A stretch of 63,209 nt of DNA, counting the filler, from Ministeria vibrans ATCC 50519 (taxonomy: Eukaryota > Protista > Filasterea): NCBI GenBank assembly GCA_943704425.1. It is 4 parts of 4 records of this genome, joined end to end, with 100 filler letters (N's around TTAATTAATTAA, not from the genome) between each part and the next. Parts side by side here need not be neighbours in the genome. Positions count along the whole stretch, not along the records: positions 1 to 27,811 come from CALSCP010000209.1; 3 more parts are not named here. One strand, 5' to 3'. Position 1 is the stretch's first letter. Each line of letters opens with the position of its first letter. The notes below the pieces were generated by a model that saw nothing but the letters and a program-made list of their open reading frames with translations, was not told the DNA's origin and ran no database searches. Position numbers and translations under genes: made by a program. This document shows, piece after piece, positions 2,780 to 21,533 of the stretch.

Positions 2780-4392
2780 ATGTTGGGTGCTTTTGCTCGA
2801 CGTCCACTTTTCGTGGCGTTCCACGGGCGCCATTTGGCGAAAACGGCGTTTTCAACAACGGTCGTTTCGCCCAACGCAGACGCAAGCACGAGCGCCGACG
2901 GCGACAAGACCGGCTCGAAAGGTGCCGAGTCGGCAAGTGACGCGGCTCCCGTGGCGACCTTCAACGGAAAGCCAGTGAGGGCATTGAGCGATTTTTTGCT
3001 CGACACTTTCGACAGACAACACGACTACCTGCGCATCTCCTTGACGGAGCGATGCAGTCTCCGATGCACCTACTGCATGCCTGAAGATGGTGTCGAGCTG
3101 ACGCCCGACGAGAAGCTTCTGAGCAGCGACGAAATCATACGTCTTGCGGCTCTGTTTGTGCAGGCGGGAGTGCGCAAAATACGCTTGACGGGAGGCGAGC
3201 CACTGGTGCGCCGCGACGTGGTCGACATTGTGGCGCGTCTGTCGGCACTGCCGGGTGTCGAGACGGTCGGCTTGACGACAAACGGTATCTCGTTGCGACG
3301 CAAAGTGGGTGCGCTGCGTGAAGCCGGACTGGGCGCCATCAACTTGAGTCTCGACACGCTTGTACCAGCCAAGTTTGCCATGATCACACGACGTCCAAGC
3401 AACGGCCTCAAGGGCGTCATGGCAAGCATTGACGAAGCACTTAAGGCAGGATTCAGTCCGCTCAAGATCAACTGTGTGCTTATGCGCGGTGTCAACGACG
3501 ACGAAATCAACGACTTTGTCGCATTGACGCGCGACCGACCCCTCGACGTGCGCTTTATGGAGTACATGCCCTTTGGCGGCAACAAGTGGGGCCACAGCCG
3601 ATTTGTCTCGTACGACGAGCAGCTTGATCTCATCCGAGCGCACTTTGGCGATCTAGAGAAGCTCACAGACGAGCATAGTTCCACAAGCAAAGTACGGCGT
3701 TTTCTTTTGTATTTTGTGTAATGTGACTCAAAGTGTCCGTCTCAATATGTCTCAATGGTGCAACAAATATGCAATGAATGTGTGTGTGTGTGTGTCTATG
3801 ACAGTTGTTGTTGTCGTTGTTGTCGTTGTTGTTGATGATGATGCTGTGTGTGTGTGTGTGTGTTGTGTGGGCGTGTGTGTGTGAGTTTGCCCCTCCTCAA
3901 TACCTACGCGTGCGCTCTTAGGGCTGGCGAGTGCCGTCTCACTTAGGCACCATTGGGTTTGTAACGTCCATGAGCGCGCACTTCTGCTCCGAATGTACTC
4001 GAGTGCGTCTCACCGCCGACGGAAACCTAAAAGTGTGTCTTTTTGGCAATGCTGAGGTCTCATTGCGCGACCATTTGCGTTCCGGGGCAACAGACGAACA
4101 GCTCTTCAACGTACGAAAAACTGCCACACGTTTTTATGAGAAGTATGCAAAAAACTGACACGTTCTTTACTTCCGTGTAGATTATTGGACGTGCAGTGAA
4201 AGCAAAGAAGAAACAACACGCAGGTAATTCGCATTCTATTCTTACAATGTGTTCCATTTCTGTGTAATTTTGTGTGTTTTAAGTGTGTAAATCATTTTGT
4301 GTGATTTTTGTTTTGTGTTTTTTTTTTGCCTTTTAGGAATGTTTAATTTGGCGGAAATGCCAAATCGTCCAATGATTCTTATTGGGGGTTGA
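2780..4392 (+). CDS. MOCS1: GTP 3',8-cyclase (MoaA/MOCS1A), radical SAM
   Basis: [19 protein letters not shown] (CX3CX2C), [30 protein letters not shown], terminal exon 4337-4392 [18 protein letters not shown] with the essential C-terminal GG; N-terminal mitochondrial-presequence-like leader. Confidence 0.95.
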
Positions 4393-8064: not shown

Positions 8065-11044
8065 ATGGACGGCTTTAAAAAGAAAAAGTAGGTTGTTAGA
8101 GTGGACGAGGGTCACTGGTGCGTGTTTGTCTCATCAATTGTGTGTGTGTGTGTGTGTGTGGCAGGCGTCCTCAGGCGCGACGCACAGCGAACGTTGTCGA
8201 CGACGATCAAGCGAATGACGCGACGTCGTCCTCAGCCATGGACGCGACCCCGCCGTCCCACGACAACCCATCGGAGGCCGTCGACCGTGCCGACAAAGCG
8301 GGCGGGGTGCGTAAGGCGCGTCAGACGGGTCTTTTGAGCTTTGGCGACGAAGAGGATGCGGCCACGGTTGCGCACGACGCCGCAGAGGCATCGGCCGAGC
8401 GACTCGCGGCGGCGGCGGCCAAGAAGAAGCGAGGCAAGAAGAAGAGCTTCACCGTGCCAATGTTGCCTGCAGACGACGACGACGCTGGTGGTGGTGGTGG
8501 TGGCGGCGGCAACAGCAGCAACGCGAACCATCACAGCGACTCCATCCTCATGCAGCACGCGACACACTCAAGTGTCGGCGAATACTCGGCGGAGCGCATG
8601 GCCAAACTCCGACAAGAGACCCTGGGCATGCGCGCACTCCCTAGCCACACCGCTGGCACGGGCGAAAACGAAGAAATGGGAGGCGGAGGGACTGCTGTGC
8701 TTTCGACTACACTCATCCCCGATGCATCAGCCATCTTCCTGGCGAAAAAGAAACGAGAAATGGCCCGACAAGTCGGCGGCAGAACAGGCGAGCCGACATC
8801 GTCTATGAGTGTGGGTCAACTTGGCTCGAGTGCCGACTTTGTCACGATGGACACAAACGGCGCTGGGCACGGCAAGGGCAAGGCACATTCACGACTGGTG
8901 CGCGAAGATGACAATGATCACAGCGAGGAGGATGAAGAAGGCAATGCCGAGGGACGCATGACATTTGATAATGCTGTCACGAGCGAGAGCAAGAAGCAGC
9001 GGCGACGCGTGATACGGGCGGCTCTCGACAGCGACAGCGAAGCGAGCGACACCGCGCCACAACACCAGCAACAGCAACGACAACTGAAGAAGAAGAAGCA
9101 GCATCACAATGGCCATGGCGACGATGACAACGATGATGACGATGACGACGACGACGAGCGGGTGATGCGCCGATGGGAGACGGCGCAGATTCGCAAAGGG
9201 GGCAAGACGATTGTGGACGATGAGCTGCGCCGGCGCAATCGTGCCACTGCCGCTGCAGCCGCACAGCGTCCCGACGACAGCGAGGCACTCCTCTCCATTG
9301 CCCTTCTTAGTCTCAGCAAAACGCAAAACGTCAAAATTCCTTCCCGCATCCTCTCTACTCCCCTCTCGCTTCTCTCGGCGACCGTCGATGCGTCTCTGCC
9401 AGCTGTCCAGCGACACACAAGCGCACGCGTCGCTCTTGTCCGCGAAGAGGCTCAGCAGGCACACACTGAGCTTGAGCGTCTTCAGGCGTCTCTCGACTCT
9501 CTTGAACAACAGACGAGACGTATGCAGAACTACGAAAGCATCAATCACAATATCAATTGACTCTTTTTTTTTCTTCTTTTTTTTTGTCTGTTTGGATAGA
9601 AATGACGGAGGAGTTGAGTGACGTGACGGGCCCTCGTTTTGAGTTCCTTCAGGTATCATCATGTCAAAACACTAATATTAAATTATTCTCTTTTTCATAT
9701 CATATTTTCTTCTTCTTTTATTTTTAGAGGAAACGGGAGTACATTGATCGACTGATTCAACAGTTGGACGAGAAGAGTGGAAGGCTGACGGAGATTGAGG
9801 TGGATCAGCACAAAGCACTGCGCACGGTGGGACTGGCAAGTGTGGGACGACGACGGCGGAGGGTGGACGAGCAGATGCGCGCATGTGCGACTGGTACGAG
9901 CGCGGGCGAGGGGGCTGGTGGGGAGCGGGAAGAGCGGGCACGGCGCCATGGGGTGGGCGAGAATGCAATGGAGTTGGGTGCGTGGACGGATGGCGACGAT
10001 GACGGAGACGATGCTGATGCGGATGGGGACAGTGCAATGCGCAGTGGACTGGGTGGTATGTCTGAGGTGCAGAGTGCCCGACGAACGTTGATTGAGGCGC
10101 CTGACGAGGCACGCGAACTGTTTGCGACCATCCCTGACGAGTTCTCACCGCGTGCAATTCTCGAGCAGTTTCACGAGTGGCGCACGCGGTTTCCGCAGAG
10201 CTACACGGACGCGTATGTGTCATTGGCGCTACCGTACTTGTTTGCGCCATTCATGCGTGCACACATGGTCGGATGGAATCCGTTTGGGACGAGTGCCGGC
10301 GAGAGCGAGAGCGACTTTGAGAGTGCGTCATTTCTGGGCGATTTGGCGACGTTTAGCAGTGTGGTGGGTGGCGAGGGGGACGCCGAGCTGGTTCCGCAGT
10401 TGGTGGACCGGACAGTGATCGGGGCAAAGCTGACTGGTCTTGTGACACACGTATGGGATGCGTTTAGTCGGCAGCAGTGCTCACGTTTGGGTTCACTACT
10501 GACGCGCCTCGAGGAGTACTACCCGCTGAAGGAGAGCGGCTTGACGGGCGATGCACGCGAATATGTGTATCGGGCGGTGGCGGAGCGACTGCAGACACTT
10601 GCCCTGAGCGAGCTGCGAGTGCCACCCAAGGTGGTCGCGGCAGCGGACGAGCACCAGCGACAGGTACAACAGGAACGCATTGGGGCGGCGCTCAAAGGGC
10701 TCACGCTGGTGACGGAGTGGGCGGGAGTGATGCGAGAACGTGGGCGTTTGGGCGATTGGGAGCGATTGAGGGACGTCGCGGTGGAGACGCTCATTGGACA
10801 ACAGTTGGCGACGCTCGTTGGTTCGTCGTGGGAGAACAACACACTGTCGCTCGAGGCGCGAGTGTCTCTGGCCGAGCGCATTGTGTGCACAGTTGCAAAG
10901 GAGTTTGCGGGACAGTTGTTTACGTTAAGTGGCGCACTGGTGTGTCTGCAGGAGCACATTGAAAAGGAGTGCACTGCCGTCGATGAGCGTGTCCAACTGC
11001 TCGAGCGCTCTACCCATCTCCGACAGCAGATTGGAGAGAAATAA
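8065..11044 (+). CDS. GC-rich sequence DNA-binding factor family protein (PAXBP1/GCFC2, spliceosome-disassembly NTR2-like)
   Basis: LLSFGDEED, IPDASAIFLAKKKREMAR, RWETAQIRKG, ILEQFHEWRTRFPQSYTDAYVSLALPYLFAPFMR..WNP are typical of GCFC-domain proteins; first exon MDGFKKK| inferred. Confidence 0.85.
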
Positions 11045-16804: not shown

Positions 16805-18823
16805 TGTTTGTTTTGTTTTGTTTTTGTGATGTACATGTGTGCATGTGTCTTTGTGATGTGCTTGATTGATTGATTGTTGTGGTACATAGGTTGCTGTGTC
16901 TATTAACGAGGCGAAGCGTGATCGTGAGAACATGAAGAACGTGATGAATCTGCAGGGCCGTCTCGAAGGATACAATGGACCCGATCTCATTACCATGGGT
17001 AAACTTGTCAAGGATGGAGAGGTCGAAGTTCGCACGGACGGAGAGAAGGTAAATACTATACGCCGTTGACAGATCCGAGGCAAAGTGAGAGACTTTTAAT
17101 TTTATTCTTTTTGACGAGTGTAGAAGATGAAGCGACGGTTTGTATTCCTGTTCGACTTGGGACTGATTGTGTGTCAGCTCAAGGGCAACTCGTACGTGTA
17201 CAAGCAGACGGTGATGCTGTCGGGCCATGTGCTGGAAGACTCTGGCGGCCACAATGTCCATGCGTGGATTCTGCGTAATGTCAAGGCCGTACGCACCCAA
17301 AGTTTTGTTTATTGTGCACGCGTCGCCTCATTACTCTTTGTCTTGTTTGGTGTGTGTTACGTAGGACAAGGAGACGATTATGTTTCTGTGCAAAACGGTT
17401 GAGATCAAAGCACGCTGGCTGACTGCCTTCACTGCGGCCATCAGCAACACCCCCGATGCCCTTGTGCTCATGCACCGTCAGAAGATTTCCGATGTGCGCG
17501 GCACCGACGATGCTCCGAGGCAGCACGGTAGGCCATACAAGACGCAAAATGTTTGTTGCTAACCAAGTAATAATTATTATTATCATGTAGAATTGAAAAT
17601 GTTTACGTACTCCAAGGCGACCTTTTGCGTACATTGCCAATCATTGCTGTGGGGCATTGCGAACCAGGGATTCAAGTGCCAGGGATGTGGCATTGACTGT
17701 CACAAGAGATGCATTTCGCACATTGACCCGGAGTGCAGACCGCGCAACTTGGGGCGGTCGTCGGCGCCGGTGTCCGCCGCACAGCCCGTGTCAAAGAAGA
17801 AGAGCAAGATAGAGAAGAAAAAGAAGGGCAAGGAGGCAATGGATCTGAGCTGGATGAAGGGCAACGGGTCGAATGCGAGCGGCGATAGTTCCGATAGGCT
17901 TGCCACGGGTTCGTCTCACTCGTCGTTGCGCGGTGGTCAAGAGGAGCCGACGACGGTTCAGGCGCGCTACGAGTTTGTCGCCAAGGATTCCAATGAGCTC
18001 AGTTTCTCCGCCGGCGACCTTATTTTGTTGCTGGATCGCTCCAATCCTGCCTGGTGGAAGGTAAGAGGGAATGAGAAGGACAGGGGAAAAGAGGGGGATT
18101 GATTTTTTGTGTGATTTTTATTTGTCTGTAGGGACGATTGGAGGGCAATGTGGGGTACTTTCCGTCGACGTATGTGGTGCTTCAGGATGGCACGGCGGCT
18201 GCCGTTGAGAAGAAGACTCGGCCATCGTACGACCTTGTGTGTGTGTGTGTGTGTGTGTCTTTGTGGTGTGTGTGTGTCTTTGTGTCTTTGTGGTGTATGT
18301 CTTTGTGGTGTGTGTGTGTGTGTTGTTGTTGTTATTGTTGTGTGTGTATGTGTGTGTGTCTTTGTGTCTTTGTGGTGTATGTCTTTGTGGTGTGTGTGTG
18401 TTGTTGTTGTTGTTGTTGTTGTTGTGTGTGTGTGTATTAACAATTTATTATTTATTTTGTTCTTTAGGGAAAAGATGACGTCGTCTTTTTTGCCGTCCAA
18501 GGGACTCGGAGACGCATCGCGAATGGGAGTGGGAGAGATGCCCACGGCTGTTGGGGTGGTTGTACCGGCCGCCACGACGGGTGCGTTAACGGTAGGTACA
18601 GTGGGCATGGGCGACGACGGCGACTACGACATGGTCGAGGGGGCGTGGCAGGGCAGCCCGTGGTTCTTTGGCAAGCTTAGTGGAGACAAGGCCAAGTCGC
18701 TGCTCATCGACTGTGAGCCAGGGACCTTTCTGGTTCGCGAGAGCGAAGGTCGTCCGGGAGATTACTCAATGTCGCTCAAGTAAGAGATTGAACGGAGAGT
18801 AGGGAGACTTTTGGTTGTCTGAC

Positions 18824-18859
<36 letters not shown>

Positions 18860-19043
18860 GAATAGGAACCTGAGCTCAGTCAAGCACGTGCGCATTGTGC
18901 AGAAGGCCAACCGGTACTCATTGGCCGACACAAAGTACTTCAACAGTATTCCCGAGATTGTCCAGACGTACCTTGAAGAGTCCCTTGAGAAGTACTTTCC
19001 CGATTTGCCTGTCACTCTCACTGGCTACCCTTCTCGGTCGTAG
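14432..19043 (+). CDS. VAV: Vav-family Rho GEF (CH-acidic-DH-PH-C1-SH3-SH2)
   Basis: Exon 1 MDTYWKKVRDL..|EATVLDFAVALKDG (CH), acidic DDIYEHL/EDIYEAL, DH (ILDELLETERNY..LKDLIKTPMQRILRYPLLL), PH (RFVFLFD), C1 (FCVHCQSLLWG..GFKCQGC..HKRC), SH3 (ARYEF..ELSF..WWKG), SH2 (WFFG..GTFLVRES). Confidence 0.93.
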
Positions 19044-19261
19044 GCCCGTTTACTTTTTTTTTTTGCGTGTCATGTGTGTTTTGTGTGAGTGTGTGTGTGA
19101 GAGAGACTCTAAGAAAGAGAAAAACTGTATTTTTGCTGCCCTCTTTTTTGTGTTTTCTTTGTTCTTGTCTCCCTCCTACGTGTGTTTCCTTTCTATATTC
19201 ACCAATACAAAGATGCTTTTTATATAATTTTTTAAACAAAATTAGATGAAGAGTATCGGTA

Positions 19262-19360
19262 GGGTTTATTTGAACTGTTAAAAATGGGGTTTATTTGAAC
19301 TGTTGAAAATGGGTTCATTTGAACTGTTAAAAATGGGGTTTATTTGAACTGTTAAAAATG
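19262..19360. repeat. Four tandem copies of a ~25-bp unit GGGTTTATTTGAACTGTTAAAAATG
   Basis: Directly visible head-to-tail copies with 1-2 differences and no spacers; on the - strand three of four units contain AATAAA. Confidence 0.95.
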
Positions 19361-19384
19361 AAGTTGCTTTTGTTGCTCTTTGCT

Positions 19385-20646
19385 TCAAGTGGAGAGAATC
19401 TGTTCAACTTGAGCGTAAAGAGAAACGGTGGCTACGCTGGAGAAGAGAGGAGGAGGAGGACTGACGGGGGGGTGGGGTTGTCGGGTGCCAACGAGGAGAA
19501 TTGCGTCGAGCTCTGGGAGTGAGAGAGGAGCGAGAGGAGACGCGCTGTTTGCTGAGACAGTTGGCGTGCGAGCACATTGCGACGCTGTTGTGCTTTCTGT
19601 TGTTGTTGTTGTTGTTGTTGGTGCTCGGAGTGACGGGGCTGGGAGCAACCGTCGATGAGCAGAAGACAGAGGAAGAGGATGAGACAGCGTTCCCACTGCA
19701 GGGGAATTTCAAGTGCGGCAGACTTGAGTGAAACGCTGTCAAGCTCTTCCGAGCTCTTCTTTTTGGTCCTTTTGGCCTTTGATGTTGCAGACTCACTGGC
19801 ACCCGGACCGGCGGTGCTTGGCGTGTTACTGAGCGAACGCAAATGCTCGTCGACGGTTTTTGCGTGTGCAAGGCGTCGTTGAGCAGCGCTCAGCCAGTGA
19901 GTCTGCATCGCTTCGAGCTGGCCCACCAGTCCGAGCGAGTCTGAGTCCTGCAAGTCGCGACGAGCGCGCGCGAGCAGTTGTGAGGCAATCTCATGCATGC
20001 CCTTGAGCAAGGAGGCCTGGTCGCGTTCCAGTTGACCGACCGTGGCGGTGAGCATGGTTGATTCGCTGTACATGGCCTGTGCGCGTCCTTCGAGTTCGCC
20101 CACTTCATTGTGTGCTCGGTCGCGAATCTTCTGCGCTGCACGACGGTTTGTCAAGCGGCGTTGCTGAAGGCGCTCTTCCGCACTGTAGGGTCTTCTTCGA
20201 CGGCCTAATTAAAAACAAGGGAGCAATTAGATCCCCAATGAAAAAGTGCCACGACAACAGCAAAGTGCTCGACCGACGTGGAACATCCAAAAGGAAGGCT
20301 GGAAAGGGGCGCAACGACCATGCAGCGGCACACCGCACATCATACAAGTACTGACAGGGCCATTTGGAACAGAAAGCGGAGCAGGATGATAAACAAAAGA
20401 GCCGTTTTTGTTTTCTGTTTCTGTTTTTTTTTTTTTTTTTTTTTTTTTTTGGGGGGGGGTTTTCTGTCTCTCTGTGTTTCTTTCTTTTCAGGCGCAGTTG
20501 GTTGTGTGCATCGACATACCTTCACTGCCGCTGCCACTGTGCGCCCGTCGAATGGGGCCGACGGACGACGATTGAGAGGATTCCGACACATCATCGACCA
20601 AACAGTCGTCTGAAGCCATGCCGGGCGACCACGCCTCGTCTTCCAT
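19385..20646 (-). CDS. XBP1: XBP1/HAC1-like bZIP transcription factor (unspliced form stops at 19432, 299 aa; IRE1-spliced form stops at 19385, 308 aa)
   Basis: Exon 1 20646-20520, exon 2 from 20204; basic region RRRRPYSAEERLQQRRLTNRRAAQKIRDR plus zipper (NRxAAQxxRDR typical of XBP1/HAC1); twin IRE1-type stem-loops downstream; overlapping second reading frame. Confidence 0.85.
19699..19718 (-). other. Predicted IRE1-excised 20-nt unconventional intron
   Basis: - strand reads TCAAGT-CTG/CCGC-ACTTGA AA TTCCC-CTG/CAGT-GGGAA: two stems each with a 7-nt CNG/CNGN loop. Confidence 0.85.
20235..20253 (+). promoter_or_regulatory. ERSE consensus CCAAT-N9-CCACG in intron 1 of the XBP1-like gene
   Basis: CCAAT gaaaaagtg CCACG is an exact match to the mammalian ER stress response element; function untested. 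Confidence 0.55.
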
Positions 20647-20951
20647 GGTCCACGGCGAGAGTGGGATCAAACGGAGATGCGAAAGACGGGAGGAGTACGG
20701 AAGTCGCAAAGGACCAAAAAAAATATAATAATAAGAATTATTATTGAATATTGATTGAAATTCTGAAAATCAGTCAGCTCCAAGTTCACCAATAACAAAC
20801 CAATAATAATAGGGGTGTCGTAAACTGTCGTTTCAATCAATAGAGTACCTTGGGGCTTGGGCTTCTGTCCTCGCCTCCTCGGCACTCCTCTCGTACTTCT
20901 CGAATCAGTCATCGATTTGATGTGTGTGTTAAAACTGATTATAATTATTTA

Positions 20952-21533
20952 ATGCAGAACTGGCTGGCACTTTCCCTTTGCCTGGCGCTGTATGGCCACT
21001 GCTGCAGTGCTGCTGCTCCAGACTTCTTCCAGGTTGAGGTCAACACGCAGCTGGGGACGGCGACATTCAACGTGACGCGATCGTGGAGTCCGCACGGCGT
21101 CGACCACTTCTACGATCTCGTCCAGGCTGGCTTCTACGACGACTGCGCCTTCTTTCGAGTCATCACAGGCTTTGTGGCACAGTGGGGCATCAATGGAACG
21201 CCCAGCGTCAACGAGAAATGGAACGGGACGATCGCGGACGATCCCGTTGTGAAGAGCAACCTGCGCGGCTTTGTCTCGTACGCCATGGACTCCAACCCCG
21301 ACTCGCGCACGACCCAGATCTTTGTCAACTACGCAGACAACTCTCGTCTTGATGCTGAGGGATTCGCGCCCTTTGCCGTCGTCTCGGAGGCTGACATGGC
21401 GCTCTTTGACAAGCTGTATGCGGGCTATGGCGAGCAGCCCGATCAGGAGCTCATCTACCGCGACGGCAACCCCTACCTGAAGCAACACTTTCCCAAGCTT
21501 ACTTACCTTGTAACGGCGCGACTGAAGAAATGA
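20952..21533 (+). CDS. Secretory cyclophilin-type peptidyl-prolyl isomerase (PpiA-like), intronless
   Basis: Signal-peptide-like N-terminus; GFYDDCAFFRVITGFVAQWG, SNLRGFVSYAM, SRTTQIFVNYADNSRLD..GFAPFAVV. Confidence 0.9.
   Translation: MQNWLALSLCLALYGHCCSAAAPDFFQVEVNTQLGTATFNVTRSWSPHGVDHFYDLVQAGFYDDCAFFRVITGFVAQWGINGTPSVNEKWNGTIADDPVVKSNLRGFVSYAMDSNPDSRTTQIFVNYADNSRLDAEGFAPFAVVSEADMALFDKLYAGYGEQPDQELIYRDGNPYLKQHFPKLTYLVTARLKK

Follow-up and report, generated by a model that had tools for sequence, protein, structure and literature searches.

A Hac1/Xbp1-type RNA element with a predicted 20-nucleotide unconventional intron in a bZIP gene of a probable unicellular holozoan

Results

The bZIP gene and its transcript

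The window analyzed here is a stretch of DNA of 63,209 nucleotides, and all positions refer to it unless a contig is named. A bZIP gene is transcribed from the minus strand at positions 19314-20723. RNA contigs from four public runs, each from a different study, were collected for the region 18900-21100 and cover positions 19313/19338-20203 and 20519-20700/20723. The interval between the two blocks is a conventional spliceosomal intron of 315 nucleotides with GT..AG ends (20204-20518, minus strand). The 20203/20519 joint is present in four out of four runs. Because this intron is skipped in every run, the contigs represent RNA and the gene is transcribed. The resulting mRNA is approximately 1.1 kb long after conventional splicing. 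A C run followed by about 37 A residues occupies 20405-20450 of the intron on the minus strand and was skipped as a repeat when the contigs were aligned.

Exon 1 (20519-20723) contains the start codon at 20645-20643. Exon 2 (19314-20203) contains the bZIP domain, the RNA element described below, both alternative C-terminal tails, and the 3'UTR. The poly(A) site is located at approximately 19314, where a loose T-run before this position represents the poly(A) tail of the minus-strand mRNA. A plus-strand gene convergent with the bZIP gene ends at approximately 19241. Between these two genes lies a 25-nucleotide unit repeated four times (19262-19360, 92% matches). On the minus strand, every unit includes an AAUAAA, and the bZIP mRNA is polyadenylated inside this repeat.

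The bZIP domain (20002-20175, minus strand) is composed of a basic region and a zipper of approximately six heptads. It scores 31 bits against Pfam bZIP_1, for which the cut-off is 27.6, and 34.6 bits in the genome search. Its best relative of solved structure in the PDB is JunD; we know of no XBP1 bZIP in the PDB. The basic region reads N-x2-AAQ-x2-RDR, which may resemble that of XBP1. No relatives of the protein beyond its own strain were returned by phmmer against 1.8 billion representatives or by two word-seeded searches. At the level of protein sequence, the similarity is that of bZIP proteins in general, with no detectable similarity to XBP1 beyond the fold. Inspection by eye of the sequence upstream of the gene revealed no ERSE- or UPRE-like motif worth reporting.

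The bZIP gene has a head-to-head neighbor that encodes a cyclophilin-type peptidyl-prolyl isomerase (20850-21533, plus strand; PF00160, 59 bits). Approximately 240 nucleotides separate the RNA contig ends of the two genes (20723 and 20962). With translation from the ATG at 20949, the cyclophilin would begin with what looks like a signal peptide, and it would be an ER foldase whose promoter region is shared with a UPR factor; the contigs begin just after this ATG, so the start is unsure.

Several other features of the window can be named. An SH2 exon (18661-18786, Pfam SH2) is found within 18148-18786 on the plus strand, preceded by a (TG)n-rich stretch. This stretch includes an 82-nucleotide repeat (18236-18435) and creates long artefactual ORFs on both strands. 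Three further plus-strand genes at 2780-3718, 8118-9557, and 9764-11041 encode, respectively, a MoaA/MOCS1-like radical-SAM protein, an NTR2-domain protein, and a GCFC-domain protein, the last two being splicing-related.

The twin-hairpin element

The minus strand at 19740-19683 contains two adjacent hairpins enclosed by an outer stem. The 5' arm of this stem, GACAGCG (19734-19740), forms seven base pairs with the 3' arm, CGCTGTC (19683-19689), and has pair probabilities of 0.97-1.0. Hairpin 1 (19709-19727) has a 6-base-pair stem, TCAAGT/ACTTGA, with pair probabilities of 0.79-0.97. Its 7-nucleotide loop, CUGCCGC, is at 19721-19715. Hairpin 2 (19690-19706) has a 5-base-pair stem, TTCCC/GGGAA, and the 7-nucleotide loop CUGCAGU at 19701-19695. 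Both hairpins are placed by the covariance model (CM) alignment as well as by the sequence. Both loops fit the pattern CNGCNGN, with C at position 1, G at position 3, and G at position 6 (CNG|CNGN). Cuts after the G at loop position 3 are predicted at 19719/19718 in hairpin 1 and at 19699/19698 in hairpin 2, and would release a 20-nucleotide unconventional intron (19699-19718). Read directly from the DNA, the hairpins, their 7-nucleotide loops, and the outer stem agree letter for letter with what a sequence-only reading had claimed, and the proposed removal of these 20 nucleotides by cutting after CTG in each loop follows from the sequence.

The complete element (19675-19746, minus strand) is a full-length match to positions 1-72 of the Rfam family RF04247, named "bZIP non canonical Hac1/Xbp1 intron", a bifurcated stem-loop of the Hac1/Xbp1 type. 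For the gene, the match reaches 43.3 bits, where the gathering score is 41, and has an E-value of 1e-6. The element therefore passes the curated membership test of this RNA family, which Rfam describes as based on metazoan sequences (PMC11701678). At many or most stem positions of the alignment, pairing is maintained through compensating letters and not through identity. The alignment requires a 3-nucleotide deletion between the hairpins. When the genome was scanned with the family model, a single match was found in 29.7 Mb (E-value 4.8e-6), and this match is at the bZIP gene.

The location of this match is informative. The genome has about 11 bZIP_1 loci, and the match is on the sense strand of one of them, at a distance of approximately 0.3 kb on the 3' side of its domain. 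The features looked for in a bZIP mRNA of this kind are all present: the element is in the coding region, it is 3' of the domain (20002-20175), and the length of the predicted intron is not a multiple of three.

The loop motif by itself is not enriched, with 143 copies of CNGCNGN in the window against 126 expected. A loose twin was defined as two CNGCNGN loops, each closed by at least five pairs and 15-40 nucleotides apart. One such twin was found in the window, while 400 shuffled 27.8-kb windows produced three. At this rate, several loose twins are expected by chance in a genome of 29.7 Mb. The significance of the element comes from the whole structure and its context, not from the loop motif.

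Folding of the element

The element is more stable than shuffled sequences, with a z-score of -2.7 for 58 nucleotides and -3.1 for 151 nucleotides. A fold of 19660-19765 adds further enclosing stems, in which 19744-19750 pairs with 19671-19677 and 19755-19760 pairs with 19661-19666 (5' arms within 19744-19760, 3' arms within 19661-19677, minus strand). The canonical drawing has an energy of -18.2 kcal/mol, compared with -20.7 kcal/mol for the thermodynamic optimum. The check by RNA folding that had been suggested for the element is favorable in part. Pairing is well supported in the central stem and in hairpin 1 (probabilities of 0.8-1.0), whereas the canonical register of hairpin 2 is disfavored by the energy model, with pair probabilities of just 0.02-0.16. 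This low value arises because the central stem can gain two pairs.

A different fold is predicted when the 20 nucleotides are removed. The exons zip into a single long hairpin, in which the strand that was the 3' arm of hairpin 2 takes the 5' spacer UUUCAC as its new partner. The restored CUGCAGU is then no longer in a 7-nucleotide loop, and is located instead in a stem with a 4-nucleotide loop.

Reading frames across the element

Translation by script of the RNA-supported exons from the ATG at 20645 yields 299 amino acids when the 20 nucleotides are kept and 308 amino acids when 19699-19718 is removed. The switch proposed from sequence, including the tails as quoted there, is thereby reproduced on the exon structure given by RNA.

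The C-terminal tail of the unspliced product is encoded by 19432-19698 on the minus strand, with its stop codon at 19434-19432. It contains the hydrophobic segment CLILFLCLLLI (19654-19686), which begins four codons past the 3' cut and is present in the unspliced frame only. The Kyte-Doolittle value of this segment over its 11 residues is 3.6, while the maximum for the spliced tail is 1.5. A hydrophobic segment just after the site in the unspliced form, as had been described, is thus borne out. The tail of the predicted spliced product is encoded by 19385-19698 on the minus strand, with its stop codon at 19387-19385, 47 nucleotides beyond that of the unspliced frame. This tail has 103 residues, is rich in Ser, Thr, and Pro, and contains two acidic-hydrophobic patches.

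Worth noting is that all three frames are open for approximately 90-100 codons past the site, in a C-rich stretch. A given frame stays open in 7% of shuffles, a figure that rises to 30% if the shuffling is done on codons of the unspliced frame. The earlier statement that both frames close correctly holds as far as the stop codons are concerned; as an argument for splicing it is weak (p of approximately 0.07-0.3). When codon usage was scored as log-odds, with 8.5 kb of exons from this genome as the training set, the spliced frame came lowest (-0.19), followed by the third frame (-0.10), the unspliced frame (0.02), and a control region (0.25). Neither openness nor codon usage gives a coding signal in the new frame, a protein-atlas query returned no hit for the tail, which is uninformative, and any function of the new tail is putative.

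The 20 nucleotides are kept in all contigs of the four RNA runs. Since contigs drop minor isoforms and the growth conditions of these runs are unspecified, the absence of a form with the 20-nucleotide deletion is weak evidence and does not count against splicing. The spliced-form protein is likewise absent from a collection of 5.8 billion proteins searched over a length range that includes 308 amino acids, which is also weak evidence. The excision of 19699-19718 is accordingly treated here as predicted, from the sequence and from the match to the curated RNA model.

The same transcript is present in an environmental metatranscriptome contig (L008, JGI sample 3300040761) from a near-identical strain, and the conventional intron is missing from this contig too. 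Its protein, P0001, has 298 amino acids in the unspliced frame, is named "hypothetical protein", and is the sole database entry for the gene. The description of the switch as invisible to standard gene prediction is therefore a fair one. Two metagenome scans, one for relatives of P0001 and one for a gapped pattern of the two exon ends with 0-20 letters between them, came back empty; both missed even L008 and are therefore uninformative. This contig differs from the window at six positions, consisting of three substitutions and a 3-nucleotide change in a CAA repeat. Two of the three substitutions fall in the tail that is read in both frames, and the hairpin region is identical; six differences are too few to prove constraint or to compare the frames.

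IRE1 and ligase genes

A search of the genome for IRE1 and for RtcB or Trl1, as had been recommended, recovered an IRE1 with kinase and KEN domains and an RtcB. The IRE1 gene (contig C1199) has a 912-amino-acid exon that encodes an N-terminal or luminal part, a membrane-like segment (about residues 381-399), a kinase domain (Pkinase, residues 532-817, 146.9 bits), and the start of the KEN domain. The KEN/Ribonuc_2-5A domain is split over two exons, scoring 24.9 bits in this exon and 90.7 bits in the next. The closest relatives of the protein are ichthyosporean proteins (41% and 39%), followed by cnidarian, other animal, and fungal proteins named IRE1. In a quick tree it forms a long branch that falls outside both Metazoa (support 100) and Fungi (support 98), with its placement relative to Ichthyosporea unsettled.

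RtcB was found on contig C2497 as five exon matches, the best of which scores 179.8 bits. The Trl1-type ligase domains PF08302 and PF09511 were not found in the genome, in a search run without a positive control.

Identity of the organism

The genome contains approximately 25 SH2 loci, two T-box genes, and three integrin-beta genes, with the T-box and integrin-beta genes located on contigs C1301, C1244, C749, C376, and C2390. No LHC proteins were found in it. This gene content fits a non-choanoflagellate unicellular holozoan of filasterean or ichthyosporean grade. A photosynthetic stramenopile, considered as an alternative, is rejected because of the missing LHC proteins, the many SH2 genes, and the T-box and integrin-beta genes. 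The earlier assignment to a unicellular holozoan agrees with these genes, with the lack of LHC proteins, and with an IRE1 that branches outside Metazoa and Fungi.

Comparison with known IRE1 substrates

The element is most readily compared with metazoan XBP1, in which a three-stem structure presents 7-mer loops with the junction consensus C(C/U)G|CAGC (Peschek et al. 2015, PMC4687415). Shared with metazoan XBP1 are the three stems, including a central exon-exon stem and two arms with 7-nucleotide loops that are cut (here, by prediction) after the loop G. The loop CUG|CAGU is nearly the consensus and CUG|CCGC is close to it. Also shared are a short frame-shifting intron 3' of the bZIP domain, a hydrophobic region confined to the unspliced product, the presence of an RtcB-type ligase, and a predicted exon zipper after cleavage. 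The predicted placement of the restored motif in a stem with a 4-nucleotide loop is likewise as in spliced XBP1 (PMC4687415). The differences from metazoan XBP1 are an intron of 20 rather than 23 or 26 nucleotides, a C at position 5 of the first loop, and a U at the end of the second. The hydrophobic segment is short here (11 residues) and begins four codons past the site, the protein has no detectable similarity beyond the bZIP fold, and the organism is not an animal.

An unconventional intron of 20 nucleotides is known from hacA of Aspergillus and Trichoderma (PMC13703316). The filamentous-ascomycete hacA/hac1 genes resemble the present gene in intron length, in a frame shift that leads to a new C-terminal tail, and in having a conventional intron as well (PMC13703316). 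They differ in the ligase, as fungi ligate with Trl1 whereas here RtcB is present and Trl1 domains were not found. The IRE1 of this organism is also outside the fungal clade.

In Saccharomyces cerevisiae, the UPR is driven by the bZIP product of HAC1, whose mRNA is cut by IRE1 at two 7-nucleotide loops. These share their three invariant letters with the two 7-nucleotide loops here. The yeast intron is approximately ten times longer than the 20 nucleotides of this gene. It pairs with the 5'UTR and blocks translation of the unspliced mRNA (PMC4891664), whereas the unspliced frame of the present gene is a normal ORF.

Plant bZIP60 has comparable twin hairpins and a short intron, of 23 nucleotides (PMC4891664). 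Loss of a hydrophobic region on splicing has been described for both XBP1u and bZIP60u (PMC4891664, PMC6213907). The hydrophobic segment of bZIP60, like the one described here, is at or just after the site and is lost on splicing (by prediction, in the present gene). The unspliced product of plant bZIP60 is a true membrane-anchored protein, and splicing removes its membrane segment. In the present protein, 11 residues are too few for a standard membrane span, and plants are another lineage.

Discussion

The gene at 19314-20723 is probably this organism's counterpart of XBP1/HAC1, and its mRNA is probably spliced by IRE1 together with RtcB. The architecture of IRE1-spliced XBP1/HAC1 mRNAs, which the sequence-only reading had recognized in the hairpins, is supported by the match to RF04247, by a transcribed bZIP host gene, by the frame shift, and by the presence of both IRE1 and RtcB.

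The following sequence of events is proposed. In unstressed cells, the 20 nucleotides would be kept, and the 299-amino-acid protein would be made with a tail that opens with the 11-residue hydrophobic segment. If it acts as in XBP1u and plant bZIP60u, the segment may guide the nascent chain, together with its mRNA, to the membrane of the ER. When ER stress sets in, IRE1 would use its KEN RNase to cleave behind the third loop nucleotide, G, at 19719/19718 and 19699/19698. The central exon-exon stem would hold the cleaved halves together while the exons zip into one long hairpin, and RtcB would join the cut ends. Loss of the 20 nucleotides would shift the frame and replace the hydrophobic tail with the 103-residue Ser/Thr/Pro-rich tail, giving a 308-amino-acid protein that may act as a soluble activator.

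Other explanations can be offered for the same observations. IRE1 may cut the mRNA at a real site with no productive switch of frame, in which case the mRNA would be degraded or otherwise processed in a RIDD-like manner, or only the loss of the hydrophobic tail would matter, with no separate function for the new one. The lack of a coding signature in the spliced frame, its openness at a level that is not significant, and the absence of the spliced form from contigs and protein collections all speak for this, and in Schizosaccharomyces pombe Ire1 does act by RIDD without HAC1 (PMC13703316). Against this reading, the two sites, the three-stem structure, the exon-exon stem, and the predicted post-ligation zipper are features of a splicing substrate and not of single RIDD sites. 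RtcB is encoded in the genome, and the new frame reaches a stop just 47 nucleotides past the old one. A non-productive cut is thus considered improbable, though it is the least improbable of the alternatives.

A relic or chance look-alike, with hairpins that are not cut in this organism, is less probable still. The RF04247 score is just 2.3 bits over the gathering threshold, the loop motif occurs at chance level, loose twins appear in shuffled windows (three in 400 of 27.8 kb), and no relatives were found that could show conservation. Against this, the match is unique genome-wide (E-value 4.8e-6) and sits on the sense strand of a bZIP gene, one of about 11, on the 3' side of the domain; the predicted intron length is not divisible by three, and a hydrophobic segment follows directly. 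The element is also identical in the second strain, where six differing positions are too few to prove constraint. Very improbable, and the lowest in our ranking, is a structure with some other role in the mRNA that is independent of IRE1, such as a translational pause, a localization signal, or a protein-binding site. In its favor are the strong folding of the region (z-scores of -2.7 to -3.1) and the long enclosing stems, but nothing in the structure calls for another reader, and the conserved loop letters are those that IRE1 needs.

Splicing by IRE1 and RtcB therefore remains the preferred reading. IRE1-bZIP splicing, the oldest branch of the UPR, has been studied in depth in yeasts, filamentous fungi, plants, and animals. 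No description of IRE1-dependent splicing in unicellular holozoans was found in the literature searched, the coverage of which was incomplete. The finding is to be expected on evolutionary grounds, yet the switch is unannotated and directly testable, and its interest is accordingly moderate. The picture of how the IRE1-bZIP system works is unchanged by it.

For the organism, the locus provides a concrete and easily tested substrate for the study of the UPR in a close relative of animals. The annotation of the gene would be corrected to two predicted products rather than one. For the family, the gene is a data point between the fungal version of the switch (20 nucleotides, Trl1) and the animal version (23 or 26 nucleotides, RtcB). 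Whether the animal-type logic of XBP1 (translation of an unspliced form that bears a hydrophobic targeting segment, a three-stem RNA whose exons zip, and ligation by RtcB) is complete in this unicellular animal relative, and combined with a 20-nucleotide intron of the length otherwise known from filamentous fungi, is in our judgment evenly balanced. If it is, 20 nucleotides would become a candidate for the ancestral opisthokont state, and the co-translational targeting of the substrate mRNA would predate animals.
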